A stretch of 63,984 nt of DNA, counting the filler, from Intoshia linei (lineage: Eukaryota; Animalia; Orthonectida): NCBI GenBank assembly GCA_001642005.1. It is 7 parts of 7 records of this genome, joined end to end, with 100 filler letters (N's around TTAATTAATTAA, not from the genome) between each part and the next. Parts side by side here need not be neighbours in the genome. Positions count along the whole stretch, not along the records: positions 14,911 to 40,438 come from LWCA01000496.1; 6 more parts are not named here. One strand, 5' to 3'. The notes beneath the pieces were generated by a model that saw only the letters and a program-made list of their open reading frames with translations, did not search any database and was not told where the DNA came from. The stretch's first letter is position 1, and every line of letters starts with the position of its first letter. The position numbers were made by a program, and so were the translations under genes. Below, one piece after another: positions 18,057 through 39,600 of this stretch.

Positions 18057-18260
18057 TTTTATACATTTTAATTACATTTTTTTATTACGGCAATTATGTT
18101 GGATCATATATAAATTATTTAAATTCAAAGAGAAAATGAGTCAGCTTAGTTACAAGTTGTAGCTTACAACTTCAAACTTAGAAGTGCGCAAATTTTTAAT
18201 TTTTAATTAACGTTTGATATGGTTACATATAAACTCTAGTTTATTTTAAAATACAAAATT

Positions 18261-18677
18261 ATGAGTGCGGATAAGAGTAATATAAAAGTAAATGATAAGA
18301 AAAAGAGTGAACCAGATAATTCCAAAGACACTGAAAAAATGAATCAAGTATCTAAAACCAAAACAAATAATCAAAAATCAAACTTAGAATCTCAATTTAA
18401 CTCCTTATCAGATATGGTTAAACGTAAAGAAGAATTAACTGGTCAACTGATTGCTTTAGAAAAGCAAATTTATGCATTTGAAGGAAATTACCTACAAGAA
18501 ACACAAATTTATGGCAACGTAGTACGTGGTTGGGATAAATACCTATGTTCAACGAAAAACTTTTATAATGGTATAAACGACCCTCGTAACAAGAAAATTA
18601 AAGATTCAGATAGAATTTTTTCTAAATCTTCTGCTACTCTCTCCAATTATTTAAATGAAAATGAAAATTTAAAATAA
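18261..18677 (+). CDS. MEAF6: Chromatin modification-related protein EAF6/MEAF6 (NuA4/MYST HAT complex subunit), single exon
   Basis: LSDMVKRKEELTGQLIALEKQIYAFEGNYLQETQIYGNVVRGWDKYL and RNKKIKDSDRIFSKSSAT match the EAF6 signatures LERQIYAFEGSYLEDT..YGNIIRGWDRYL and ERLFSKSS. Confidence 0.95.
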   Translation: MSADKSNIKVNDKKKSEPDNSKDTEKMNQVSKTKTNNQKSNLESQFNSLSDMVKRKEELTGQLIALEKQIYAFEGNYLQETQIYGNVVRGWDKYLCSTKNFYNGINDPRNKKIKDSDRIFSKSSATLSNYLNENENLK

Positions 18678-18914: not shown

Positions 18915-21900
18915 ATGGAGCGCATCAAGGTTTATTGTCGATTTTTAATTTGATTGTTTTATAGAGTTGGAAAAATGTAATTTTTCGAGGTATCGAAGAT
19001 TCTTCGAATAGTAATGTTCAACAGTCACTCCGAAGAGAGTTTACTCATGTAAAAAAAATTAAAAATTCTTTATAATTTAATAGATTGGTTTCATTAAATC
19101 TCCCGAAATAAAACCTATACCTGGTTTAATAAGAGAGGACACATGGACTTTAAACCCCTCCATTCATGATAATGTAATTTATCGATCTCCAAGTAATACA
19201 ATAGGAAACAATTATAGTCCAAAAGCTAAAGATTTATTTTGCACAGCGAGAACAATAAAATCTAGTAAGAAAAGATCAAAATATGAATCTTACTGTGATT
19301 ATGAAACTACCGGATTATTGTTTATTTTTAAAAGATAAAATTGTATTATTTTTTAGAATTCAAACAGATAGTTGCATAGATGATAACAGGCCAGGTTCTC
19401 CCTTGCAACAAATAAATTTAATTCGCAACACACTAAAAAAAGTTAATGATTCAAATGTCAGAATGTGTGACATGCAAGTATACATATTTTTTCAATATAA
19501 TTAAAAAACCCATGTTTTGTTACATCTTTGTATATTTAAATGACAAAAAGTCATCGTATCAATTTGAAAATATAGATAAAATTGGCAGTTGGTTAACTAA
19601 AAATAATTGATTTACATGAGTTTATTAGGTTTATATTTTAGCGTTATCACAATTACATAAATGATTCAATTGATTCAAAAATTATATTACAACAATGTTC
19701 TGGAGAGTTAGAAAAATTATGGGGCAGTCTCTTACTTCGATTCTCAGAGACTGATCTATATAATAACAAGAGTTTGTTAGAGAACATACACGGCGATATT
19801 AATGAGAGTTATGCATATAGCCTAAAAAAATGCATAGGTTTTTATTAATTGTAGTTCATTAATTTTCCTTTAGTCAACTACATTTTACGAAGTGAAGAAG
19901 CACAAACACGTTTAAATTTAAAAAGCATGTCTGACATTCACAGTAACTGGTAATATATCAACAAAATTCAATTATTATTAAATTAAAACACGTATTCTAT
20001 AAAACTAATCCAAGATTTAAGCATAATTCGAGCACCTGTACCTTGGAGTAGTTACATTCACAATTACAAAGCATCATTGGAGAAAATATTATTTACAACT
20101 AATGAAATTATGTTAGAAATTCACAAAAGTTGGACAATAATGTATTTCAATATAATTAAAATATATATTTTTTTCAGGATGGAAAACAAAGTATTTATAG
20201 ATATAGATAGTGATCAGAACAAAATTCCAATTAGCCCAACTCAATTTTACAGTTTAATAGATTCTAAATGTACTGAGACCAGAAAGTTTCTGATTGACGA
20301 GTAATTTTATTAATATGAAATATCATTTAACCATACAAATACAGATGGATGAAAACTATTTTGAATATTTTACTAAAGAAGAAACATTTTTGGGAAAATT
20401 ATTTGCCGTCTAAAAAGAAAAAAAAAAATAAAGAGTCCAATATAAATGATCAAAAAAATACTAATATATCACAAATTACTGGATTTTTTAAAACTATATC
20501 TAGTTTACTGTCGATACAATTGCGTTATATGACGAATAAAATGATTAGTGAATTTATAGAAATGTTTGAAGCTTATTATGTTTACCTTAATAAAATATCA
20601 TACTAAAAAAAATTTAGATCCACAGTTCAAATTTTTTAAATAACAAATGCTCACTTTTGCTTTTGAATATAATAATTAAAAATAAAAAAGTAACATTAAG
20701 TCCAAATTACAAAGATTGTCACCTAATTTTAATAAAATGTTTTCATACGATAATCAAAACAGGTAAATACATTTTTATCGTTAAACATGTAGGTTAAATA
20801 CATTCTTTTTAGTTAAGAATATACCAAATGTGGAGAATATGCTTTTTAAAAGTTTCAAGAATCTGACCAAAACTGATGCTTCAAATCAAAAAAAATCTTT
20901 GTTTGATAGTAGAAACAATATTATTCAATTGAAGGATTTGTACGAAAATATAATTTTTGAGTCTAGTGTCTGTGTTCGTTCAATTCAATTTGATGATAAT
21001 TGCGTTACTTCTCGCATTAATTATGCAACCGAAATACTTAAATTAAACTTTGAAAACCCTAAATTATATCTTCAAAATTACTCTGTTTTCTATCATCTTT
21101 CCAATAACAAATCTCATCAGGAAATTACCGAATTTTTGGAACATTCTCATTCGCTAGAAGGCTTAGTTTTGGTAATTCATATTTAAATTCTAATTTTTCG
21201 GCGCCAGTCCATCGTTGTATTAATTGTTGACTTTTTTATTCATATTATTTTCAAAAAATTATATGGGCCCGTTTTGGAAAATTTAAACATGATAAATTTC
21301 AATTTTAAACGAAGAAAAAGTTCTAGTATATTCAACAAAATAAAATCGGGGACGATCTGAAAATTCAATATTAAAATTATTGTAATGATTTAATTATAGT
21401 AGACAATGTTTAAAACGGTGTTTTAAAGTTGAAAAATTTAAAAATAAATAATTTACATATTTACTGAAAGGGTCACCAAAAGTATTCTGCCGACCCTTGT
21501 TATACATTGCATAATTATAAACAAATAATAATATAATATTTACAGAAAATTGAAGAAATTCGACAAGTTTGTATGGAAATTTTGTCTTTTCAGATAAATA
21601 TACAATTCAACATGATTTGTCTTAATTCTGAATCTATAAACAATGAATTGTATGGCCGAGGAAACGATTTGATAAAATTAATTGTGAAATTTCAAAATAA
21701 TCAAAACCGAGAAGCGAATAAAGCGTATATATTACAATAAAAAAATTAAATTAATTCTTTGCTTTAGAATCATACGTGAATTTGAAGTTATTTCTGAAAA
21801 TTTGAATAATAAAATTACTAAAACAGAAGAACTCATTAACCAACAAAAATATTTAGTTAAAGTAATCAATATTATAAGATTACAAAAAATTGACATTTAA

Positions 21901-24900
21901 AAATAGATTTCAGAAGTAGAAATTCACAGATTAATTGAATATATACGGTCTGCCGCAAAAAGATTTGAATTTCTAGCAGAATATTCAAACATGTCGAGTA
22001 ATGTACATTGTATTTTTGTAATGTAAATAATGTTCTAGCTGATGATATAAAATTAAACACTTCTGTTATTCATTGGCCAGATCATTTAAAAAACTTGTTG
22101 GGAATGTGTAAAAATAATTTGGAACACAGTCGAGACACAATACAAAACGAATTGGTGAATAAAATTAAAGAAACTAAAACTGAGATTGACAGTTATTATG
22201 ATGAACTTTATACATATAAGAAAAAGGAGGTATTTTTATTTTTTAAATGTTTTTAGTATGTGTTAGTTAATTACCCAAGATGAGTTGAAACATAATGCTA
22301 CCGAATTGGAAGAAATTTCAAACAAGGTGGAAAGATTATACGCCAATTGCAAACAAATAAACTACGAAGAAAATCTCCTGGATAGAGAAGTTACCGTTTT
22401 TGAAAATTTAGAACAACTTATGCACGTGAAAAACAATTATTATGATTTGTGGAAAATATCGTATGATTTTTATTTGAAAAACGATACGTGGTGCAATGGT
22501 AAAAAAAAATAAATATTATATTACCCGTTAGGTTACCTGAAAGACTTAGACTACGAAGAATTCAATACTACCATTAATAATATGTTAAATAGAATGAACG
22601 AGCTTATGGTGGAATTTTCAGATTTAGTTTCTCCCAGAACTATAGCAGAGAAAATGAAACATAAAATTCAGAAATTGATGCAAAATTCACCAATTATTAA
22701 AAATTTGTGCAGCAAAGCTTTAAGAGAAAGACATTGGATTGAAGTAATTATACATGAGATCAAAACTGTCGTATATAACCAGAATCATCTGAGTCCACGA
22801 TAAAATTGACCCATTTAATTCTCTGTGGACCCAGTTTTCTAAATTTCGGAATATTCATTTATAATTTAGATTTCCAAGTTGATGGACATTTACTCAATCA
22901 ACGAAGAAAAAGTCTGCTTTAATTTAATGTTGGAATATGATGTTCAAAATTTCAGTGAAGGGTAATGTGAATAAGAAAAGAGTACAGATTTATTTAGAAT
23001 CGATAAAATTACTCAACGAGCGGAACAAGAGTGGAAAATAGAAAAATCACTACAAGAAATACAAGGCATATGGAATGTGTTGAAATTAAACATTAAAGAA
23101 TACTCCGAATATCCGGTTTTTTGGTTATTTTTAACTCATCATTTTCATTTAGTCGTACTATATGCTGGGAGAAATTGAAGATATAGTGTCCATGATTGAT
23201 AATCATTCTATACGTATCAAATTTTTAAAAGTTTCAAACCACGTAGAACCATTTCTTAAAAATTTAAACGAAATAAATGAAAATCTGCAGAACATGAGCA
23301 AAATATTTTCATTATGGCCACAGGTTCAATCCTTTTGGGTTTACTTGAAACCAATGTTTGGAATAAGCGATATACTATCACAAATCCCGGATGAATATAA
23401 TGAGTTCATTATGGCAGACAGTGATTGGAAAGACATAATGATTAATGCACATAATAAGAAGGTTTGCATTGACGTACTCACAATTAATCAGCTGTACATG
23501 CGATTGGATCAAATTTATAAAAGAACAGAGAATATAATAAAAACAATGCGATCATATTTGGCTAAGAAGCGTAACGGTTTTGCTCGGTAAATTTAATTTA
23601 AGAAAAATATAATTTTTCAAATTTAGTTTTTGGTTTATTAGTGATGAAAGCCTAATGAAAATTTTGGCAAATTCTCAAAATTTTTTAGAACTACAAGAAA
23701 AAATTTCCACTTTATTCCCTTGTATTGACAGGCTTGATATTGATGAAAATAATGGAGAAGTAGTAGTAATTTCAAACAAAAATGATGTGACGGTTTTAGT
23801 AGATAAAGTGAATGTAAACAAATACGAGGTTAAAAGCTTTAATAACATTTCAATATTTTCTAGGCAAGTGTGGAAAATCTTTTAACAAATTTTCAAAATA
23901 ATTTAAAAATAACGATAAAGTCAAATATAAACACTTGTGTCGAGCATTATGAAAAATATACGTTTGAAAGTTTGATTACGGCTTTTCCTATTCAAACCGT
24001 TCTAGTATCGGAATATATTATTTGGACTAAATTGATTAGCAAGGCGATAAGAAATGCAGACATAAGGGTACATTTTACATTTGATTGCATAGTTTAATCA
24101 GCATTTAGAAATTTGTACATTTGTACACTGAAAAATTAGAAAAAATTTTCCAACAACTCAAAACAAAATGGACTTGCAATGTTTACAATTGTGCTATAAT
24201 GATTTTAAATTGTTTTTAATAATAATAATTTTTTAATTAATGTTTAGTAAGAGACATTATTTCCTCATTGGTCGAGGATAATAATAACAATCTTCTTAAT
24301 TGTGAATCATTTGAATGGCTCAAACAAATGAGATATGATTTGCATGACGGTAACATTAATGTTCATATGATGGATTATAATCACGAATATAAATGTGATT
24401 ATTTGGGAGATGTTGTATGTATGGTTTCAACTTCTAAAACCGATAGATGTACAAGGTAAACTACTGGACTATTTAGGTCATTTTCGTGTATTTAGATCGT
24501 TATTTTTATCATTTTGTGAACACCGAATGTGCACTTTAACGAACGACGTTTGCAATGGAGCCTCTCAATATGTTTTTGAAAATTTATCTGCATGTTTAGG
24601 AATTGAAGTAACTATTATAAATCAGATGATTTAGTATTATAATTTAGAATATTAATTATGTATGCTTTTCTTCAGACTATCGAAAATCTATGTGTAACAT
24701 TTTCAAAGGTGTTGTACAATGTGGAATGTGGTGTTGTATGGTCAACATAAACGATATGCATGTAAATTATTAAATTGAAATATAAATAAAAATTTACGTT
24801 TAGAGAGAAAATTTAGATTTTACACTAGATTGCATGAATCTTGTGAAATTTTCATTTAACCATCAAAAAAATATGATAAATATTGACTCATGTCAATTTG

Positions 24901-27900
24901 TGTTTGAAGGGAATTGCAATTTTTTATTTCTACTCAATATGGAACCAAATAATATTGGTAGAAAAAGTAATGTTAAAATCCCCGACAGCATATTAGACAA
25001 GTTTAGAACTTTTCATTTCATCATTCCGAACCTTGAGAAAATAAGTAAGAATCTCATGATATGCCATACTACTACAGAATTAAATCAGATGGGAAAAGCA
25101 TTGATCAAATATTTAAATATCGTCTATGCCATTTGTGGTTTTCAACCAAATGTAGTTTTAATTTTACAAGTGTATAAAGAATTGAATATTTCTAATCCAC
25201 AAAATGAAAATAATTTTAAAAAACTGCTTTTGGGACCGGCAATATCCAAAATTTTTTACCCTAAAATATCTCTACTACACTACCATTTAATAACAGATGT
25301 TTTTAAAATAATTTTTCAAGATTTATCAAACGTAAATGAAATTTTATTGGAACCCATGAAGCTCAGTACAAGTAAAATAAGCAGTAAAGAATTGGTGGAT
25401 AACATGGACCAATTCTTAATGGCTTTTGATGAATTGATATCTATTAGAAACTTGTCAAATTCATCTTATTTCATGTCGCAAGTGGCATCCATATATAATC
25501 AATTATGTACTAATGATTCCATATTCGTTTATGGACCCATCTTTACTGGTAAATCGACTTGCATAAATATTGCATTGGGAATATTTGAAAAACTTAATCT
25601 ACATGATAAAAATTACAATTCTATTCATCAGAATAGTATTGATTTCAATGCTCTCAGTTTCGATCAAATTTTTGGAAGTTATAACAAATATGGAGATTGG
25701 TCAGATGGCTATTTAGAAAGACAAATGAAACAGTGTAGTTTAAATTCCCTTAAACTATATGTACTTCACATTGAATCGGTTTTAGATCAGCACATGTGGT
25801 TTGATATCATAATGTATTTTATGAAAAATAACCACTTTTATTTAAATTCTGGGGACATAATCGGTATGCCGTATAACCTCAAAATTATAATAGAAACTAA
25901 TAGTATTACCAATTCATCACCACTTGTAATAATGTTACACCCCATACCATCAATTTATATATCGAATGTTGTCAATTCAGAATGCAATTTCTACAGAAAT
26001 AATAATATTCAAGTTATTTTCCCACATGATCACATGTTTAATCTTTTGCTAGAAAGATTTATAGTTGAAACATCAAGGTATTTACAAAACGATGAAGAAA
26101 TATCATGTCTTACAGAATTGTGCAATTGGCTCTTTAAACCAGTTATTGAATTTTGTATAGAAAAATGTCAAACCATTATTGGAAATTTTATTAATCCCGC
26201 TCTCTATCTTCAAAATTTTATCAAATATTTTTCAACCTTATTTTCCATTGAAAAAATAGATCAATTAAACAATTCAATGCTTCGATTACTGGCTATGCAA
26301 TCGTTATTTCAGGTATTTTAATTGATATTAAAAAATATAATATATATTTTAATGTAAATGCGAGAAAATGTTATATTTTTATTAACTTTATAATTTTTCA
26401 ATTACATTGTCCTTCCTTACTTATATAATATGCTACGCGATTTTTGTTTGTGTGTGTGTTCCAATTTATTGAAATAACTATTAGTCTTAGAATTTTATAA
26501 AGTCCACATTTCAATTACAGTTTTTTCCGGGACGTATAATAAGTGTGTTTACTTTATTAAGTGTGTATACTGAGTGTGTTTGTGTGTGTAACCATTTATT
26601 GAAAAAATTGACAATCATAGGATTTAAAAAAACCCAATTTCTAATGCAGTTTTTCCCAGAACGTATTTTTATTTATTTTTCAGTTTCAGAATTTTAGTCC
26701 TTCAGGGTCAAAAACCTGATTTTCTCTTTTGTTTAAAAAAAATCAGTTCAAAAATTTAATAAAACATACATTCTGGACGCGTTTTAAAATCATTAACTTG
26801 TCGTTAATTTTATCTTCAGAAACGCATACCTTAATGGTCAAAACCACAAATTACGCTTTGTTTTAAAAATGAAACATTTCCTAAAATTTTATAAAATATA
26901 AATTCTGGGATAGTTTTTAAAATCATAAGCATTATCATAAATGGCAACCTCAATCTGAGCTCAGTCGCTGATCTTTGTTGTCGGAAGTTACTATTCTGAA
27001 TACAAAATTAGTTATAAGGGTTTATTTTTTAATTTATATAATTGGTTATAATTAAATCATACTTAATTAACTTAATCTGGGATTATTTTAATATTATTTT
27101 TTGATAATTTCTCGTAAAGGGCTTTGTTAAAAAAATCTTAAATGACTTTCCCCTTTAAGGTTTGGTAAAAAAATAAAATTTGAAATTCCCTTCTACTTTC
27201 CCTTCAAGGGCTTGGTACATAAAAATCTTAAAAAAACCTCCTGTTGAAGGTTTCGTCAAAAAAATAATCTGAAAGTTACCGATTGACAGTTTGGTAAATA
27301 TATAATTTTTATATTATGAAAATGAGACTTATTTACCGTTTCCCATAATTGAACGATAAGTTGAACTGATCTATAAATGAAACTGTAACTTATGACTTGC
27401 GAAAAAATATATTTTAATATTAATTCCCTTAACATTTCTCAAGTCCGTAAAAGTAGTGCCCGTGTCGTGGCGTTTCACCATAAATTCAAACTTGCTAATT
27501 CAGTGAATTATAATTATATCCTAAATTTCTGAATAATATAACCAAATAGAATAATTTTTATAAATTTTTCCCGTAGACTATTCGTGGGTACATGGCACTT
27601 ATTGGGACCCCTGTAATATGCAATAATATAGTAATGTATGCACTAGTATCTAAAATATCTACAAAATTTTAAAATTTTATATTTCTATAAACTTTAGTTT
27701 TCTATCGTTTGGTCAATTGGAGCCTTGATAATTCAAAACGATCAAAAAGAATTTGAATTATTTTATAGAAACTTGACAACTAGTCAAATAACCAAACACC
27801 GTGCTCCAAATATTTTAAGACTAAATAAGGTAAATTATTTTTAATTTATTGTAAGTTTTTTTAGAACTCTTTAATTCCACAAAAAAATTCCATATATGAT

Positions 27901-30900
27901 TACTATTATGAAATTGGCTATACCTGGAAATCATGGAGTGATTTAAAATTCGAAAAATTCCCTTTGACGGAAGAAATGGATTATAATAGTGATTTGACAT
28001 CTTGTGTAGCACAAATGTATTTTAGCTATAAATTTTTTGAAAACAAACAAAATGTTGTTGTTTTGGGAGATAAACAGAGTGGCAAATCTTTCAATTTTAA
28101 ACAGTTATTGAATCAGTACAATCTGCATACATATTTAACTATTTGTATTCCATCAGAATCATCACATAATGAAATGGCGTCAGAGATTATATCTAAATTG
28201 GAGAGAAAATCTAAAAATCTATATGCTCCAGCATTTGATAATAATTTTATAATTTATGTGGATGATGTTACTTTACCGAATTTATCGATAGAACGACAAG
28301 ACCTTGACTATCCTATTATGGGTACGATTAGTAATTATTCAAAACAAGGAACTATATATAACGAATCGGAATTTGAATTTCTGCATGTTGATAAATGTAC
28401 TATGGGTGTTTCATTGAAAGGTGATATCGAAGATGTTCAATTTAATTGCAATTTTTATCGTTACTTTATTAAATTCGTTCCAATTATTAAAAAACCTTTA
28501 GATAAATCTGAAATATTATCCATTTTATGTAATTTTTTTGATATAGTGTATACTAAAAACTCACCGATATTCATGGTAAAAATTTGCGAGGCTACCGTTA
28601 ACTTATACGAGTGGGTATTTGATCTGTTGCACGACCAAAGAAATATTCCTCATAGAAACATATTATTGTCTTTGACCGACGTATTTTTAGTGATTAAAAA
28701 TATTCATAAATTTGGTTCTTCTATTGGTGTTTCCAATAAGCAACCTTACATCATAGAACCAATTTTATTAAGATGGATCAACGAATTATTCAACAACATA
28801 TTTATGAGAATTTTTCATTTTGTTCAAGATATTGAACAATTTTACACACGTATTGCCATTCAATTGAAACAATATTTCAAAGTCAATTGGGAAGATTTAA
28901 AAATGTCTACATTTGAAGATATTTCCTTGTTTGGGATTTTACCCGAAAAGTACAACAAATCCAGTAAAGTAAACAATAAAGATCCAAAATTGGAACAATA
29001 TGGATTATTCTCGAGCATGGCATATGTAAAACAGAGAATTAATGAATATTTGATTGAATATCAAAATGATAATAATACTGAATTTAACGAATTATGCTGC
29101 ACGACACAGATGGCTAAAATCATTTTAGGCATAAGTAGAAGTTTATACGACAATGAAAATGACTATAATTGTACGTATTACCTTAATGGCAAAATTGGAA
29201 CAGGGAAAATAAAAATTTTAAAATTAGCGGCGAAATTACTCAATGTAGGTTTTTTAGATTTAAATTTTACAAAAAACCCTATCGATACACTTAAAGAATA
29301 CATATCAATTTATAAAAGTGATATTGCTGAAAATTGTTCAAAAGCAATATTTATTGCAATAAGTAATGCTAATATATTGTATGACAATGAATTTGTAAAT
29401 TTAATTATACGGTACAACAAAAATAGCAATTTTGAAATATACCTAGATGAATCCCAAAAAGAAACTGAAAATGAAATGTGGTTAAAAAAAATTTCTACTA
29501 TCATTAGATGTAAATTCTTCATTACTGTTGATTGTATTAATATAATCGAAAAAAGCCATCTAAAAAAGGATATAATGACTCTAAAACCCTTTCATTTTTC
29601 ACGGTTATCTGAAAAACAAATTTTACATGAAAAGTATATAAGAAAATTATTAGAATCTTGTAAAATATATAATGTTAAATCGTGGACTGAAAGTACACTT
29701 CAAGAAATTATAAATTATTATATTAATCCAAGCGTACCTCCAGAATATCGAGATAGTATCCAGCCTCTTGTTATTGGAATGTACTCAATCTACATTCATT
29801 ATTTTAAAAAGTGATTTTTAATATTTTAAAATGTTTATTTATTTTAGATTCGCTAATATACACAAAATTGACTATGCTAAATTCACACACCACACAAAAT
29901 TTATCAACTATTGTAAAAATGTGAAAAAATTTCTACTTCAACATTCAAATCATTTGAACCATTTGCTAGAACAGATTGAAAAATATCATCAAATACTATC
30001 AAAATCGGAATCAGAGTTAAAAAATATGAAAATACATTTAAAAAAAGTTGAAGAAAAATTGAAAATAACTGTGAATCAAACAAACGTATTAGTGGACCAA
30101 CGAGAATGTGAAACCTTTGAAATTGAAGAAAAAAAGGAAGCACTAGCTGCTGAAGAAGCAATGGTATAATGAAAAATTATTTTTATATTTTGAAAATTTA
30201 GTCAAACGAAATTGTGGCACGTGCTACACAAATACGAAACGAATGTGAGAATGATGTAACATTGGCTAAACCACTATTGGAGGAAGCATGTACGGCGCTC
30301 AACGACATTAATTTGAACGATATAGCCGACGTAAAAGCAATGCGAAACCCTCACGTAATAATAAAACTCGTCATGGAATCAGTATGCGTTTTATTAGAAA
30401 TTAAACCGGAAAGAAAAAAAGACAGAAATACGGGGAAACCATACGATGATTACTGGTCTTCAACTCAAAAACTTCTCAGTGACATTAAAATGATAGATCG
30501 TTTAAAATTATATGATAAAGATAACATACCTCAAGCCATTATTCAAAAATTGAGAGAGAAATATATCAGTAATCCAATATTTGACCCTAAAGTAGTCAGA
30601 AAAGCATCAATCGCAGTTGAAGGTTTGTGCAAATGGGTAATTGCGATTGATAAATACGATAGAATTTCCAAAGAAATTGCACCAAAGCGTGATAAATTAT
30701 TAATGGCTGATAAGGAAGTCATTACAAAAAAATTAGAAGTCCAAGCCAAATCTAATGAAATTTTGGAAATGGAACAACGAATTGAGGAATTAAAAGATGA
30801 ACATGAAAATATGCAAATTAAAAAAAATAACCTGATGGCTAATGTAACGGAATCTAAATCCCGATTGAAAAATGCTCAAGATATTTATAACACTTTAGAA

Positions 30901-33900
30901 GACGAATCTGAAATGTGGCAAGCAAAGAAAGAAAACCATACAAAACTTCAAAATACTCTAATGGCTGATGTTTGTCTTTTTTCAGCATTCATTACATATA
31001 TGGGTGTTTTTCAAGAAACAGATAGAAATTTAATGGTAGTGGAATGGTATGACTTGATTGAAGAAACTATTGAACAAAAACCAGGATTTGTGGATGGTGA
31101 TTATGACTATATTTTAGAAATGTGCAATCTAAGAAAATTTTGTAAACCCATTACTAGTAAAATTAATAGTAAATCCAAAATAATGTTGCAAAATGTTTCC
31201 ATTATTATAAAATCAAATTTATTCTTGATCCTATACGACCCAGACGGTATATTTTATTTAATGTGACAGAAATTTTTAATTTCACTAAACACTAAACTTT
31301 ACATAAAAATCCCGACTTTACATAAATTTCCCTTCAAGAAATGAACATTTAGGTGTATAGAATAGAAAAATTAAAATTTCACAAGAATATTTCATTTTTA
31401 TTTAAGTTAATTTTCTTATCTATGACAGAGGTCGTGATATACCAGTGTTCTACCCTTTCGATGGGGACGCGTTACATATTGATAAAAATGCAAAAATTTT
31501 ATATCGGTCGTGTTTTTTTAAAAATCTTACTGGTCTATTAGATTTTCGAAGGTAAACAGCAGATCTTATGCATAAATAGTTTCTAGTAGAACCCTGCGTA
31601 GGTAAACATGTTCCAATTCTACCCGCTCTAAGTTTTTTTATTACGATCTGTACATCATGATTAGTATCCTATTGTATTTTTGATATATTAACTTCAACGG
31701 TGAAAAATTGAGTACCAATACAAACATCAATTTTAAGTAAACCATTACAAATTTTTTTACAAAACGTACCTAACCGGCGCGTATACCCATAGCCACGACC
31801 GTAAAAATCAAGAAATAGGCCCATATAAATAAATATAAAATATTGTTTTAAAAATGGGAGGTCTATACATTGTTTAATCCAGTGTTTCCCAACCTTTTTT
31901 GTACTAGGGCCCACTTCAAACAATGACCGTTAGGTCAAAACAAGTTAGGTTAAAAGTTAAATCAAAAAAGAATTATTATTAATTCAGTGACTATTTTTTA
32001 CTAAAAACAATAATTATTTTAATAAATTACAAATCAACAGCTTTTATTAGCCAATTGTATACGTAATCGAAAGTCGAGTTAACATAACAATACATTATAA
32101 CATTTATTTTATATAATTAATTATATTACTGAACCTGACATTACTATTCTTACAGATTATCTTAATAGTATTAAATAGGTATGACACATGAAAATCATTT
32201 ATGATTTTTATTTAATTTCAGTGTTTATTACCGTTTAATTACAAAATTAAGTCCTAGAATTAAAAAAACACCAATTTCTAATAGTTTTTCGAGAGTAATA
32301 TTAACGAAAATTTTAATTTCAGAAATTGAGTCCCTCAGGATAAAAAATAGAAATTATGTTTTTTTTAATAAATAATAAAATCAGTAATAGAATTTTAAAG
32401 AATATATATTCTGGGATGCGTTTTAACATCATTACTATTGTCGTCAATCTCAAAATCAAAAAAACTTACATCTTATGGCCAAAATCCCAAATTACACGTT
32501 TTTTGAAAAGTGTAATAGTAAATGTTGCAGTATTTTATAAAACATAAATTCTGTATATTTTTTTAAATCATGAGCATTATCATAAATCACAACCTTAAAA
32601 CCAATTAAAAAGTCGGTCTCGGCAGAGCTAGCTGCTGTTTGTACGAAGTACATAAGATTCAAGCTGGTATTGTACAAAAATAACTTTAAATGAATCTTAA
32701 GTTTTCATAATTCTGATAAATTCGCGAAATTTCCCAGGTTCCACCAAACTGACCACTAGTGGTGCCTACGGTTAGTAAACACTGAAATTAAAATCGTAAC
32801 GACCATTGAACATTTTTGTTCATTGAATCATGTATAATTGTTTAATTAATTGTCTTTAGATATTGCTGAAAAATATATTCGTTTTTATGAAAAAGAGAAC
32901 AACATTCAAACAATATTGGCTTCAGTATCAGAGGACAGATGGCTGAATAATTTTAACGATTGCCTCTACCTTGATAATCCTATTTTAGTTATTTATCATT
33001 TTGATTACATACATGATAAAGTATTACAAATAATAAACAGCTTAAATGCCCAATCTCACCTGTACAATTTAACTAATCTGGACAATAAAAATGTAATTAG
33101 GCATAAACAGATTTATTTTTGCATCAAATATATTAAACCATGTAATTTATCAGATGTATTATACCAAACATGTGTCATTGATTTTTCTGCAGATTTAAAT
33201 TGTGCACAAAAAAAAATTGTTGAAACTATTGCAGAATCATTTGGCATCATCAGTGAGCTGGAATATATAGACTATCAAAATAAAATCTATGAAAAACAAT
33301 TAATTATAAATAAATATAATGAAGATATTATTGATTTTTCGATTTCCTTGGAAGACGATATGGTTAATAATGCAGAAAAGATTTCAGATATTATAATGTT
33401 AAAGGGTAAACAAGTTGAAGTTTATGAGTCGTTAAAAGAAGAAACTGTGGAGAAAACAAGCAGTGTTGTAGTTGACACTATAATTAGATTTTATCAAGCT
33501 TTCAGGTTTACGAACCGCGTTGATCCATTTTATAAGATTTATAATACCTTTGAAAGTATCAATGATGTTATTGAAAACTGCAAATCGGCAAAACTTTCTG
33601 TAGATATGTCTGAAAATGAAATTGAGTGTGTATTAATACAAGATGTGTGGCCCATATTGTCGGTGCGATATTCTTCTGGTCACAAGGGAATTTTTGAAAA
33701 ATTGTTTGCTCATAAAAACCTTAACCGTATGGAAACATGGGATTCACTGCAAATTACATTGCAAGAAATGATAATGCAACACAATAGCAAAAACAATCAA
33801 ATATCTAAACGATTGAATTTACCAAATCCTTTGAGTTTGTGTGAATTGGTAAAAAAAACTAATTTTTCAAGTATATCTAGTTATCCTTTGTACGTTATAA

Positions 33901-35792
33901 AAACAGATTCAATTCAATATTCTCTAAACAAAATTTATGAATGTGATGAAATTTTAAACAAGTCGAATATAATTCATTTACCAGAAATATCAGACTTGTC
34001 TTCAAACTCTGCCAATTATGAAAGCATCGTAAAATGTATCAAAAAAGGTTGTTGGTTAATTATTTCAAAATTAACATTATCATGCCAAGATTATGTTTTA
34101 ATTGATAAATTCATCAATCATTATTTAATATACAAAACTAAATTTTCCATGTGGTTAATAGCATCAAATTTAAATTGGGATTGTATACCTTTAAATATTT
34201 TAAATAAATCTGTTCGGATTACACTCGAATCCAAAATTTCTCAAAGCCACTCAAAAATAAAAAATTTCATATTGCCTCAAGTAAAATATCTTTCGACAAA
34301 TGTAAACATGGTAGAGGAGAAATTGAATTTTTTAAACAATTCAAATCACAATAATAAAAAATATTTCGAGTATCACAAGAGTCTACAAAATTTAATTAAT
34401 CAAATTCAAAAATCAATTTATTTTTTCCAAGAAAGTTTAGCAGAAAATAGTTCATTTATTGTTGATAATGTTTCTCCAAATTCAATTAGTTCTGCCTCTT
34501 CTGTAGTATCAGGGGATAAAGATAAACCTGCCATCCCTAAAAAATGTAATAGTGTCATCAACAATTATCTGCTTGCCGAAATAAAAAACTTGGTTCTTAT
34601 TTGCAGAAATGTAAATAGCTCAATTTACAGTTATCTGAATTGTATACATAACACACTTAACCATTCCTATGTCAAATGTAACAGTGTGAATTGTTTAGAC
34701 ATAACATCAGATATAGTTCCCTCATGGTGCATTAAAGATACTCACATTTCAAAACCGTATGACGGAAACGTTTCGATTCAGTATATTATAGATCAAATGC
34801 ACGAGAGGTATTATTTAAATTTAGTATAATCATTATTTTTAGGTTTTTACACATGACGGATTTGTTTGATAAAAAAACGTTTACGTTCAATGCAAATTAT
34901 TTTACTCACATGTCCAAATTATTTAGTGGTAAGTTTTATATACAAGTTAATAGTTACACAATTATTTATACTTTGAATAATATTATACTTTATTATCATG
35001 AATACAGAATAATTCATGGGTGCGCGGAACGGGCTATTTACTTTTCTGAAATACAAAAAGTCCATTAATTTAATTTTTCTAATATTTAAATAAATACTGA
35101 CTGTGCTTGTCAAATTATTTCCTAAATTGATCAAAAATAAAAATATTTCCTTTTTAAGAATTTAGTATGTACGAGTAACCAATTTAAAAGTATATATAAA
35201 GAAATCATATAATTTGTCATTATTCTTAAAAAAAGTTTATTCTTTATTTGAGGAATTAGCTTGTATTGTCTTTTTTTAAGTACATTTTTTATATATTTTA
35301 GTTGTTCAACTGCATTATTCGATGATTACCAATTGCCAATTTCAGCTAGTTATTTTGGTAACACAATTACTGGATAATGAATCTGAAGTGTCCAGTATAA
35401 CGGAGACAATCTCTTCTATTCAAGATATTGCTAAATCCAATTCTACATATAATATCGAAGTATTCATTAAAAATTGATCATTATTAAAAATGAATCATAT
35501 AAAAATATAAAAATTTTAGAACTTTGTAGTCGAAATTGACGATTTTACATCACATGTTTCCATTTATCCAAGCATGCTCAATATGGGAATAAAAGTAAAA
35601 TACCTTGATACTCAATTAATGTTGTTGGATGAAAAAGAGGAACTACTTCCTAGAGATGTTTTAAATTTCAATACAGTACAAACATCATTTACTTTTGATG
35701 ACGATCTCATTTCAATCATTCAAAAATACGGATACAACCGAGTATTTATACGTCGACGTCAAACAAAAATGGAAACAAACACGGATAATTAA
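18915..35792 (+). CDS. DNAH3: Axonemal dynein heavy chain, DNAH3/DNAH7-like inner-arm type, highly divergent with degenerate AAA1; multi-exon, roughly 4000 aa
   Basis: Colinear dynein landmarks across many GT-AG exons. DNAH3-type N-terminus TWTLNPSIHDNVIYRSPSNTIGNNYSPKAKDL and IIRAPVPW; linker ALRERHW and QVQSFWVYLKPMF; FEWLKQMRY and TDRCTR before AAA1; AAA2 GPIFTGKS; AAA3 GDKQSGKS and YVDDVTLP; AAA4 GKIGTGK; stalk/MTBD MRNPHVIIKLVMESVC...YDKDNIP...EGLCKWV...APKR; AAA5 ILYDPD.IAEKYIRFYEKENN; AAA6 KKGCWLII and FSMWLI. Start and last exons are inferred from splice phase. Orthology to DNAH3 specifically is tentative. Confidence 0.92.
26414..27000 (+). mobile_element. Helitron-like element 5' portion inside dynein intron 26313-27697
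   Basis: Starts TCCTTACTTATATAATATGCTACGCGATTTTTGTTTGTGTGTGTG, the same 5' end as 11753; similar sequence at about 58140-58390. Right boundary approximate. Confidence 0.55.
31880..32784. mobile_element. hAT-like MITE shell with a nested Helitron-like 3' fragment, inside dynein intron 31247-32859
   Basis: CAGTGTTTCCCAACC at 31880 and GGTTAGTAAACACTG ending 32784; Helitron-like hairpin plus CTGG end at 32620-32667. TSD not recognisable. Confidence 0.5.
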
Positions 35793-35808: not shown

Positions 35809-37267
35809 TTAATTACATATTTTCATTCTTGGTACTGTTTTCATGTTGTCTTCACATGTGGTTTTGTAATCGTTTATCAGACTTTGTAAGGAATATATTG
35901 AATTGTTGAAATAGGATTCATCCATGCCATCCACGTTTAAATAGTGATGGAGGTGAGCTTTGCGTTTATATAATTTTTTAAAAGAAACGCTCATATTTTG
36001 AAACATATTTACAATATCGCCAGAATTTCTTAAAGCTAAAATAGCATAATCATGGCTTAACGGCTTTGCAGAACAAATACTAATCTTCCAAAAATTGGAA
36101 CAGGTCTTAGTGAATATTTGCCTTTTACTAATAATGGCATCTAAATTAGACCGTATATCATATATATTTAAATTTCCCCTAGTGCAAATACAACATGATA
36201 ATGTGGTACCAACAGGAACATGCATTAAATCTTTAGCCGGTTTTGGAGTATTTATGCTGATTCCAGTGGCTAAAAAATCTATAAATGTATTTCTTAGAGA
36301 AAAAATTCCATTGAAAGAATCAGTTATAGACCTCGGTGAATCAAATATTGGGCTTTGAGAAGATATAACGTAGTTTAATCTAGGTAATGGTACCAAATTT
36401 ACTGGAAGCTCACCAAGATCCATATTCAGTATACCATCGAGTCTAGATGAACTTGTTAAATTTAGTAGCAGTGATGCAATTAGACTATTGATGCTATCAA
36501 AGTTGTTTTTTGATTTTTTTTTGATAAAACTAGAATTAACCATTCTAAATAACTGTTTGTTTTCTATAGGAATTACTAAGTCTGAAAATTCTGATACTAT
36601 ATTTGTAGCCAAAACAGAATTGTATGGAGAAGTAATCACATCGTCTGGGTCTTGAGAAGATGGGTAAATGGGAAGAGATATTCTTTGAATCTTTTCATAT
36701 TCGTCCGATAGAATATGCATTATTTTAGAACCTAAACCTGATCCCGTTCCTAAATGTAATGATATATTGCATTATAATTATTACCTCCGCCCATTGAATG
36801 AGTTATAAAAAAACAAGACATTGAATCACAATATTCAACAGATTTTCGAATAGTCTCTATAATCTTATTTGAATAATCGTTTCCATAAAAATGGTATCCC
36901 ACTGCCCAATTATTACCAGAGCCAGAGACACTACTTAAAATTTGTGTGTTGTCAAATAGTTCCGATAATCTCCCACGCTTTATTTCATTTAAAACTCCCT
37001 CCTCCATATCTATTAATATTGCTCTTGCTCTCAGTGACTGTATTGTAGAACCTACTTGTTGAGTTTTATTTTTTTGGTTGCAATTTTGGAAAAATGACGA
37101 CATGGAATTGTCAAAAATTCCATCCTTGTTGAAGATACTATGCTCTTTCAAAGCTAGATCCCAGAATTTTTGCGCAATTTGATTTCCACATTGACCAACA
37201 CTATATTTTCAATGTTTACAAATGTTTTATTTAGATAATCATACTGAATAAATATGGACTGTGACAT
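35809..37267 (-). CDS. TUBE1: Epsilon-tubulin, about 459 aa, 3 exons
   Basis: Exons 37267-37245, 37200-36785 and 36749-35809 splice to MSQSIFIHVGQCGNQIAQKFWDLALKEH...LRARAILIDMEEGV...SGSGNNWAVG...HSMGGGTGSGLGS...DDVITSPYNSVLA...KLYKRKAHLHHY, the epsilon-tubulin-specific motifs. Confidence 0.96.
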
Positions 37268-37439: not shown

Positions 37440-39600
37440 TGTGTTAATGCTTAACACCTCTTAAATTTCGAGAGCTCGTTTGGCAGCATTATTGACTACT
37501 AGTGCAATTCCTATGCTTGAAACATCCCGTCCTAAGTAATACTTGTGATTATCGTGTTTTTTAAAGGCAATATCTACTAATACTTTCAACGATAATGATA
37601 GTATAGTTAAATCATGCCAACATTTCCTCATTTTTACATCATTTATATATGCGTTTATAGCATTATCGGCTACCATCCAAAATGATATGTAACCATATGC
37701 AGTAAAATTCAAAAAAGATGATTGATTCAGTTCTGTCGATATTTAAAATGTATGCTTTAAGCGCATATATTATACGGGACATCCTCCGGGCCTTAGAAAT
37801 TGCACCCGGTTTCAGTAATTTCACTTTACAGCATTCTTTATAGTCGTCACGCTTCTAACTTCTAATTTTAGAGAAGGATGAAATTACATTTTCAAAATTT
37901 ATTCCATTAATTTCTAATTTTGGAGGGAGATGAAATTTATTGTATTCATTAATATCGCTGATAAATAATTTATCAATTTTCCTTACAAAACATTCGTTTA
38001 TTTCGGGTTGATTAGTGTCTCCAAATAATGTTATGTAGACAGCCGAAATAATTATTTCTAGGATATGATGTCGGCAGGGCAGTTCAAGTATTTCATGGTT
38101 TAATTCATCTTTAATATATTTGACGCTACCATTTCTATATCCAGTGTTTGCTGCAGTTGTGTCAAAACACAGACCAACAACTTTCTTATACAAATTCCAT
38201 TTACGTAGTATCTGAAAAATTGTACTAGCTGTTGTGATCCCCTTTGCACCTATTTTCTTTAATAAACCGAGAATGATTTCTTGTTTGGCTTTGGTGTCAA
38301 TTGCGACTATAGCAATTCTTTCATCTTTTCAGAATTTTTTCCATCATAATATATGACACATTTTTGAATTTTGTCAACTAATAACCTAATCATTTCAGTA
38401 TCCTTATTTCTGAAAGCAACTCTGTGTCGTCTATTGGTTTCATGAGAGGTACCCTAAAATAAATTAATTATTATGAATACATGTACCATTAGTATTGCTG
38501 CACCTCGCAAAGATATATTTCGAATCGCAAGCGCGTAATTTTGAAATATCAGTTTTTACAATAGATTCAGTATTATCAGTTTGGTTATAAATGAAAGATA
38601 ATTTTCCATATCTGCCACTTTGTCGAGACATTCTATCACATTTTTTTTTATTAAATAATTTCTGGTCTTTTTACAATTACCATTTTTATTTAAGATTTCA
38701 TTTTTATATGGATTATCGTTGACTTATCGTTGATGTCATATAGCCATTTCCATATTTTTGACATTGTAGAAAATCGATATCTTCTTGTAGGGATCTACTT
38801 TGATCCGATTTCGCAACCTTAACATATATAAAACGGATAGTTATAATTATATACAGGAAACAAAGTAGTCAATTAATTTTTAAAATCTATCGCCGTGTTT
38901 GAGTTAAGGCGTCTCATTACTGTTCGATATTTTTTGAATGTATCCTTTAACTTAACAATTATACGTTCCACAGATACGATATTTAATCCCGTTTTGTTGT
39001 ATATACCGAATATTTCATATGCAATTTTACGATAATTACATGTATTACGTTCAAATTGGAACGCCAATATACGGCATATGACATTGTTTATAGTAGGTAA
39101 TTTATGTTCATTAAAAGTAAAGTCAATAAATGTTCCAACAAATAAATCACCAATTCTTGTCATTTTAAAATTTATAAAAATTTAGATAAAATAAATTAAA
39201 ATTTTCGTGATATGTCGCAATTGATTGCAAATATACTACTATTGATGCAAAAATGGTATTATAGATTGAAAACGTCTATAAACATTATTGCATACTTGAA
39301 CACCGATAAAAACCACAAAAATCGAGCTAGAATCAAATTTTAAAAATTGAAATGTATGGTAAAGCGTGGATGTTGACACCATAAAACATAAACCATGACA
39401 ACATACCGCAATGTTGTTTTTGGAAAAAATAAAGTTAAATTTAAATTTTTTTATACGATTTTCAAAAGAATATTTAAAATGATGAGCGCAACTCGAATGG
39501 GCATCTTTGCAACACCCCATTTTAGATTATTTTATATATCATGATAATACACCATTTCCGCACTAATCGCCCTTAATTCTTTGATGGGTGTGACACCCTA
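37440..39600 (-). mobile_element. Degenerate hAT-superfamily (hATm-like) transposon with fragmented transposase
   Basis: Fragments LPTINNVICRI, GLCFDTTAANTGYRNGSV...LELPCRHHILEII and VVNNAAKRAL in separate frames with stops. Terminal TAGGGTGTCA on the minus strand at 39600; related TAGGGTG ends near 6120, 11603, 14025, 40038, 49550 and 60180. Confidence 0.7.

Follow-up and report, generated by a model that had tools for sequence, protein, structure and literature searches.

Dynein heavy chains without motility have precedents, and two have been described to date, DNAHX and DNHD1. DNAHX, a heavy chain of sea-urchin sperm that has been studied by cryo-electron microscopy, is derived from the outer-arm alpha chain; its AAA1 motifs are not conserved, its Walker B is kept and ATP is held at AAA1, and insertions disrupt its microtubule-binding domain (MTBD) and lock the pre-power-stroke state (PMC11785096). 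DNHD1 lacks the Walker-B catalytic residues (PMC11785096), has been described as an orphan outside the canonical classes and a possible ghost gene (PMC8754002), and is now linked to ciliogenesis (PMC11785096, PMC8754002). Here we describe a dynein heavy-chain gene of the orthonectid Intoshia linei. The window, that is, the whole stretch of DNA that was analyzed, is 63,984 nt long, and its positions 14911-40438 are contig C3117 (LWCA01000496.1; 25,528 nt) of a 41.6 Mb assembly in 3,520 contigs. We think it probable that the gene is maintained and encodes a DNAH3-type inner-arm heavy chain that has turned into a non-motile pseudo-motor. Like DNAHX, this is a heavy chain with non-conserved AAA1 motifs for which we propose a non-motile state; like DNHD1, it has a degenerate AAA1 in which the Walker-B residues are lost. 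In contrast to DNAHX, the protein appears to be derived from the IAD-3 group (DNAH3/7/12), has lost the P-loop lysine, which makes ATP binding at AAA1 unlikely, and has a well-conserved MTBD; in contrast to DNHD1, an orphan by its description, it sits within DNAH3/7/12. What is new, as read from the sequence, is the IAD-3/DNAH3 origin, a pocket that is erased rather than locked, an MTBD that is kept, and a C-terminal third that is unrecognizable.

The gene product is identical to a public protein of 3,819 aa, OAF68192.1 (P0001 here), annotated as "hypothetical protein A3Q56_04070 [Intoshia linei]". Threading of this protein on the window DNA gives 34 exons and 33 introns, with GT-AG boundaries in 33/33; the introns are mostly 33-50 nt, with large exceptions at 26303-27768 and 31247-32859. 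In the spliced 11.4-kb coding sequence (CDS) the sole stop is the terminal one, and there is no frameshift. Whole-protein searches used the public P0001 as the query, and exon joining served only to verify the translation to P0001. The human chains DNAH3, DNAH7, and DNAH12 have a colinear plan (tail, linker, AAA1-4, stalk/MTBD, AAA5-6) that the I. linei gene appears to share; against these, the I. linei gene has an erased AAA1, a degenerate ring and C-terminal domain, and 0.19 bits/residue to human DNAH3.

ATP hydrolysis at AAA1 drives the dynein power stroke, the remodelling of the linker, and the release of the MTBD, and it is needed for motility; AAA3 only gates. When the I. linei chain is aligned with canonical heavy chains, 5/5 AAA1 catalytic elements are found to be lost, and the alignment is nevertheless colinear across Walker A and Walker B, without indels. 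The gene and the AAA1 features, the latter placed by alignment, are as follows.

18915-35792, plus strand: whole dynein heavy chain CDS (OAF68192.1 / P0001), by exact threading of P0001 on the window DNA
24418-24737, plus strand: Cys-rich AAA1 core, residues 1289-1368; 11 of these 80 residues are Cys, the highest content of any such segment in the protein
24496-24607, plus strand: AAA1 exon with erased Walker A, NDVCNGAS (24542-24565) instead of GPAGTGKT; Lys and Thr lost
24648-24761, plus strand: AAA1 exon with erased Walker B, CMVNIND (24735-24755) instead of CFDEFNR; Asp to Val, Glu to Asn
24936-24962, plus strand: sensor-I remnant, the loop TMNPGYAGR reading NMEPNNIGR; sensor-I Asn lost
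about 25134-25157, plus strand: position at which the sensor-II HYDYGMR block is lacking
25914-25943, plus strand: AAA2 arginine finger remnant, SPATVSRCG reading SSPLVIMLHP, without Arg

Because the P-loop Lys and the Walker-B acids are lost, binding and hydrolysis of ATP at AAA1 would not be possible, and the chain would therefore be unable to cycle. The AAA1 lesions, apart from that at sensor I, had been proposed in an original prediction made from the DNA alone. The two exons that it gave for the Walker motifs are the exact exons of the OAF68192.1 model, with GT-AG introns on both sides of each. Its reading of Walker A as NDVCNGAS stands, with the end corrected from 24568, which was 3 nt too long, to 24565; the Walker B reading, (C)MVNIND at 24735/24738-24755, the absence of the HYDYGMR block from the alignment, and the arginine finger without Arg at 25914-25943 were all correct. 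The colinearity that it noted is borne out, with no indel across Walker A/B, and the freedom from stops and frameshifts that it saw in the exons then spliced extends to the whole 11.4-kb CDS. We note separately that the 11 Cys of the AAA1 core compare with ∼4 in the corresponding part of canonical dyneins and with 2.4% Cys protein-wide; the binomial tail for this segment is 3e-5, before correction for about 47 windows.

A trivial explanation would be an artefact of annotation or assembly, in which, for instance, a normal AAA1 is hidden by mis-spliced exons, and gene models produced automatically in a draft assembly do invite it. The exons, however, run colinearly with canonical dyneins and leave no gap at the P-loop, and all junctions are GT-AG. 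A six-frame scan of the whole of contig C3117 returns P-loop-like motifs at just three places, AAA2, AAA3, and AAA4, and none of the form GxxxxGK[ST] that is able to supply AAA1. The canonical AAA1 hidden Markov model (HMM), when run over the same contig, matches only the degenerate Walker-B exon. An alternative exon carrying GPAGTGKT, which the original prediction had itself raised as a counter-explanation, was therefore rejected, and with no canonical AAA1 in either scan, we regard an artefact as scarcely credible.

The reading frame has been kept open over a length at which chance would not do so. At the local base composition, where the GC content of the contig is 23-31%, the stop-codon probability is about 0.085 per codon. 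The four large exons contain 0 in-frame stops each, as compared with 11-85 stops in each of the other five frames, or one stop per 8-30 codons. With such a composition, each large exon would be free of stops by chance with a probability of 1e-13 to 1e-26. Codon usage agrees, with a bias in the degenerate exons of 0.16-0.20 bits/codon in-frame versus 0.01-0.07 off-frame and in introns; the AAA5-6 exon has 0.18 in-frame and 0.01 off-frame. No stops, frameshifts, or broken splice sites, the usual signs of a pseudogene, occur in the 3,819 codons and 33 introns. Identity of the ring to its relatives is 14-18%, and as the frame is intact, the sequence must have been under coding constraint while it diverged. 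Taken together, the maintenance of the open reading frame, the codon bias, and the uneven conservation described below argue for selection on the encoded protein.

These data bear on a second explanation, in which the gene is dying or unexpressed, either as a very young pseudogene or as a promoter-silenced locus, still free of disabling mutations. Its annotation says no more than hypothetical protein, and among proteins of 278-884 aa no transcript-derived fragments of the 505-aa exon were found, as might be expected of such a locus. A ring that is near saturation with 3,819 codons and 33 splice-site pairs intact is difficult to reconcile with recent death, and the codon bias is still present. 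We consider this explanation improbable.

Loss of the catalytic site is only a part of what has happened to this protein. The original prediction saw the decay as confined to AAA1, which is not the case: degeneration is strong throughout the ring, from AAA1 as far as the C-terminus, and only the linker, the stalk/MTBD, and the P-loops of AAA2 and AAA3 are kept. The features outside the AAA1 pocket, with motifs placed by alignment, are listed here.

22411-23938, plus strand: linker, Pfam DHC_N2, residues 748-1154; 278.9 bits versus 285.1 in the control dynein, model positions 2-403 of 403
24804-26302, plus strand: 500-codon exon with the rest of AAA1, the AAA1 lid, and AAA2; 0 in-frame stops versus 29-53 in the other five frames
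25533-25556, plus strand: AAA2 Walker A GPIFTGKS, kept
27865-29810, plus strand: 649-codon exon with AAA3 and AAA4; Pfam AAA_7 51 bits, best PDB match 49 bits
28066-28089, plus strand: AAA3 Walker A GDKQSGKS, kept
28249-28266, plus strand: AAA3 Walker B IIYVDD, kept
29188-29211, plus strand: AAA4 loop GKIGTGKI; the AAA4 Walker-B position reads AISNANI
29996-31035, plus strand: stalk coiled coil and MTBD, Pfam MT, residues 2595-2928, the best-conserved part
32860-34807, plus strand: 650-codon exon colinear with AAA5-AAA6; Pfam Dynein_heavy only 12.9 bits, beyond HMM recognition

The Pfam control was P0006. The linker, at close to the control score, is conserved at a normal level; DHC_N2 reaches 280-445 bits in I. 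linei paralogues. The Pfam MT domain (stalk/MTBD) scores 109 bits versus 150 in the control, AAA_6 (AAA1) 71 bits in the spliced gene versus 353, and AAA_7 (AAA3) 51 versus 196, with AAA1 and AAA3 of P0001 both above the Pfam cut-offs; AAA_8, AAA_9, AAA_lid_11, and Dynein_C have no match in P0001 and are all present in P0006. The stalk/MTBD exon (354 aa) finds DNAH3 as its best PDB match (212/207 bits, versus 187 and 184 for DNAH7 and DNAH12), with 38-40% identity to its best homologues, and within it residues 2701-2800 of the MTBD have 47% identity and keep 87% of reference-invariant positions, where AAA1 keeps 40%. Part of the tail of P0001 is still alignable to DNAH3. Elsewhere, the similarity is faint. 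The open stretch from the AAA1 lid through AAA2 (505 aa) has a best PDB score of 40 bits, and AAA2 is seen by alignment and in a structural model. AAA4-6 are colinear in the multiple sequence alignment and below Pfam thresholds, and the AAA5-6 exon (650 aa) has no PDB dynein match at E<=1; in ESM-Atlas features, all of its matches are AAA_9/Dynein_heavy clusters (score 0.89, 195/256 features shared). Approximately 200 residues are deleted in AAA6 and the C-terminus relative to DNAH3-type chains.

This pattern is what separates a maintained pseudo-motor from a ghost gene, an idea that exists for DNHD1 in a review of dynein nomenclature (PMC8754002). A ghost gene would have no function of its own, and its frame would be kept open only because truncated products, which might for example take up docking sites or partners, would do harm. 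A ring that has for the most part diverged past the reach of HMMs and is yet open is what such a gene would look like. A ghost gene should, however, drift evenly, and here the linker scores as in a normal dynein, the MTBD keeps most of its invariant positions, and the AAA2 P-loop and the AAA3 P-loop and Walker B are retained. In the small genome of I. linei, moreover, deletion would be an easy exit. We therefore hold a ghost gene to be unlikely. The same retained elements could be taken to mean that the chain is still a working motor, with a non-canonical nucleotide pocket in AAA1 or with drive from AAA3, where GDKQSGKS and VDD are kept, acting on a linker, the mechanical element, that is conserved at a normal level. 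Against this stand the loss of all five AAA1 catalytic elements, P-loop lysine included, the established mechanism, in which motility requires hydrolysis at AAA1, with AAA3 as a gate only, and the unrecognizable state of the AAA5, AAA6, and C-terminal regions on which the linker docks; a working motor is thus very improbable.

The subfamily of the gene was assigned from PDB similarity scores, on which the labels rest, and from trees. When the whole of P0001 is searched against PDB with phmmer, DNAH3 scores 743/725 bits, DNAH7 590/585, and DNAH12 488, and the outer-arm and cytoplasmic chains reach <=302 bits (outer-arm, 233-302). A word-based query with the linker brought up no DNAH3 orthologues. 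In the linker-plus-stalk tree, the gene is placed within the IAD-3 (DNAH3/7/12) clade with SH-aLRT support of 100, and that clade excludes the outer-arm-like P0156 as well as the rows named DNAH2, DNAH6, and DNAH10. In the AAA1-AAA3 trees, its neighbor is a scorpion DNAH3 orthologue, P0194, with an SH-aLRT of 94 when other long branches are removed; DNAH3 is also the best PDB match of P0194. The terminal branch is about 7-8x the median in AAA1-AAA3 and about 3.6x in linker plus stalk. These results point to a DNAH3-type chain (IAD-3 group, single-headed inner-arm), for which orthology to DNAH3 is likely, though not proven. A DNAHX-like or outer-arm origin was rejected on the difference between 233-302 and 743 bits and on the IAD-3 tree position. 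Placement inside DNAH3/7/12 also argues against orthology to DNHD1, which is known here by its published description. The original prediction had suggested both a derivation from DNAH3 and an origin independent of DNHD1; the scores and the scorpion neighbor favor the former, and the position in the DNAH3/7/12 clade favors independence from DNHD1/DNAHX-type dyneins.

There are about 14 dynein heavy-chain loci in the I. linei genome. Among the paralogues examined at AAA1, five keep GPAGTGKT and DEFNR, and a sixth has GPTGTGKT and DEINR, a functional variant; AAA_6 scores 216-521 bits in these paralogues versus 36 bits (genomic search) or 71 (spliced) in the gene described here. Compared with their human orthologues, a DNAH12-like exon on C2540 scores 1327 bits over 1015 aa, a DNAH1-like exon on C490 scores 925 bits over 680 aa, and a DNAH7-like exon on C2238 scores 370 bits over 297 aa. 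In bits per residue, these are 1.25-1.36, as against 0.19 for the gene in question (743 bits/3,819 aa). Fast evolution across the lineage as the sole cause of the decay was rejected because the I. linei DNAH1-, DNAH7-, and DNAH12-like genes are canonical and highly conserved.

The original prediction had advised a check for a second canonical DNAH3. The further DNAH3-like gene seen in the genome is on C241 (locus L006, 3975-6944, plus strand, and L013), and its AAA1 is also non-canonical. This second divergent heavy-chain gene has GPTATGKK at Walker A and LLSELDR at Walker B, with an AAA_6 score of 216 bits. A scorpion DNAH3-like protein is its best labelled match, at 28-32% identity, and it groups with the gene described here in the AAA1-AAA3 tree, subject to the caveat of long branches. 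The C241 gene may be a lineage-specific DNAH3 duplicate. Separately, an uninterrupted open frame of 3,968 codons on C2443 (47898-48506, minus strand) has a weak AAA_6 match only (30 bits), and its sequence may be that of a midasin-like or other dynein-related AAA protein.

Degenerate AAA1 sites are also found outside I. linei. Of 58 long dyneins recovered via the stalk, 19 have non-canonical AAA1 Walker motifs; 19/19 are in the IAD-3 clade, and those that are named are all from arthropods. They include P0006, P0012, P0020, P0021, P0025, P0027, P0028, P0040, P0048, P0059, P0061, P0063, P0065, P0073, P0080, P0194, and P0212. At Walker B, scorpion DNAH3 reads CLEQFDK, Tribolium VLEEFEK, a wasp FVKNFTK, and a beetle CIKKINL, and P0025 has TLDGSCSS at Walker A and CLENLQL at Walker B. 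The I. linei gene shares with these arthropod IAD-3 chains both the clade and the kind of loss, at Walker B and sensor I. The arthropod chains are otherwise conserved, at about 0.6-0.8 bits/residue to human orthologues and with all Pfam ring domains, and most keep Walker A. Of all these chains, the one from I. linei is the most extreme. Our literature search found no paper describing the I. linei gene or the arthropod cases of degenerate AAA1.

Other features of the contig are recorded here. The two large introns of the dynein gene, 1.47 and 1.61 kb versus a typical 35-45 nt, hold weak local direct repeats. We rejected the idea that exons are missing within them: ∼9 and 42 residues are lacking near the junctions, and the introns contain weak local repeats only. 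Ahead of the dynein start codon, at a distance of about 240 nt, lies a small gene for a NuA4/EAF6-type histone-acetyltransferase subunit (18240-18674, plus strand; Pfam NuA4 85 bits). On the other side, ∼20 nt from the dynein stop and tail-to-tail with the dynein gene, is a two-exon divergent tubulin-family gene (35812-37208, minus strand; Pfam Tubulin 107 and 51 bits, Tubulin_C 34 bits), followed at 37464-39526 on the minus strand by several open stretches of 90-157 codons without a Pfam match. Rfam and tRNA scans of contig C3117 returned no matches.

If the I. linei chain is a maintained pseudo-motor, its tail would probably dock at an inner-arm site on the A-tubule, and its MTBD would probably reach the neighboring B-tubule, in the cilia of the free-swimming orthonectid stage. 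There it may serve as a passive or AAA3-nucleotide-modulated cross-bridge, a drag element, or a placeholder in the 96-nm repeat, instead of as a force generator. A role as tether, brake, or scaffold is speculation at this point. Several points weigh against this reading. A dead AAA1 normally leaves the MTBD in its tight-binding state, and for a cilium to beat with a rigor cross-link always in place is awkward in mechanical terms. The actual role may therefore be another one, for example in assembly or transport as proposed for DNAHX. By analogy with DNAHX, such a role would be the alternative, though the MTBD of DNAHX is disrupted and that of I. linei is kept. In protein databases, no close relatives that share the degenerate AAA1-AAA2 were found, only P0001 itself and canonical dyneins at about 20% identity; the absence of transcript-derived fragments, given above, counts in the same direction. 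The trees are quick searches with very long branches (4.3-5.3 for this gene) and include no vertebrate DNAH3. Finally, an AlphaFold2 (AF2) model of the 24804-26300 exon reaches a pLDDT of 70-91 in the AAA1 lid and in AAA2 and is matched by Foldseek to dynein motors (E about 1e-13), but because canonical dyneins were aligned to guide it, and with a mean pLDDT of only 62.6, its dynein fold lends support without being independent evidence.

With these points weighed, we still favor a maintained, non-motile DNAH3-type chain. Considered together with the arthropod chains, the gene raises the tentative and rather doubtful proposal that protostomes have repeatedly lost AAA1 catalysis at the inner-arm position of DNAH3/DNAH12 (IAD-3), both in orthonectids and, to varying extents, across many arthropods, and that inner-arm sites routinely hold a non-motile strut dynein. 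If true, at least one of the inner-arm sites of the 96-nm repeat would be filled by a microtubule-binding strut dynein, in which the linker and MTBD are selected for a mechanical or regulatory role without a power stroke, possibly tuned by nucleotide at AAA3. The I. linei gene would itself be a natural separation-of-function mutant, one that reveals which elements of an axonemal dynein merit retention once force generation has been abandoned. Along with the arthropod cases, it suggests that some axonemes may regularly contain structural dyneins.

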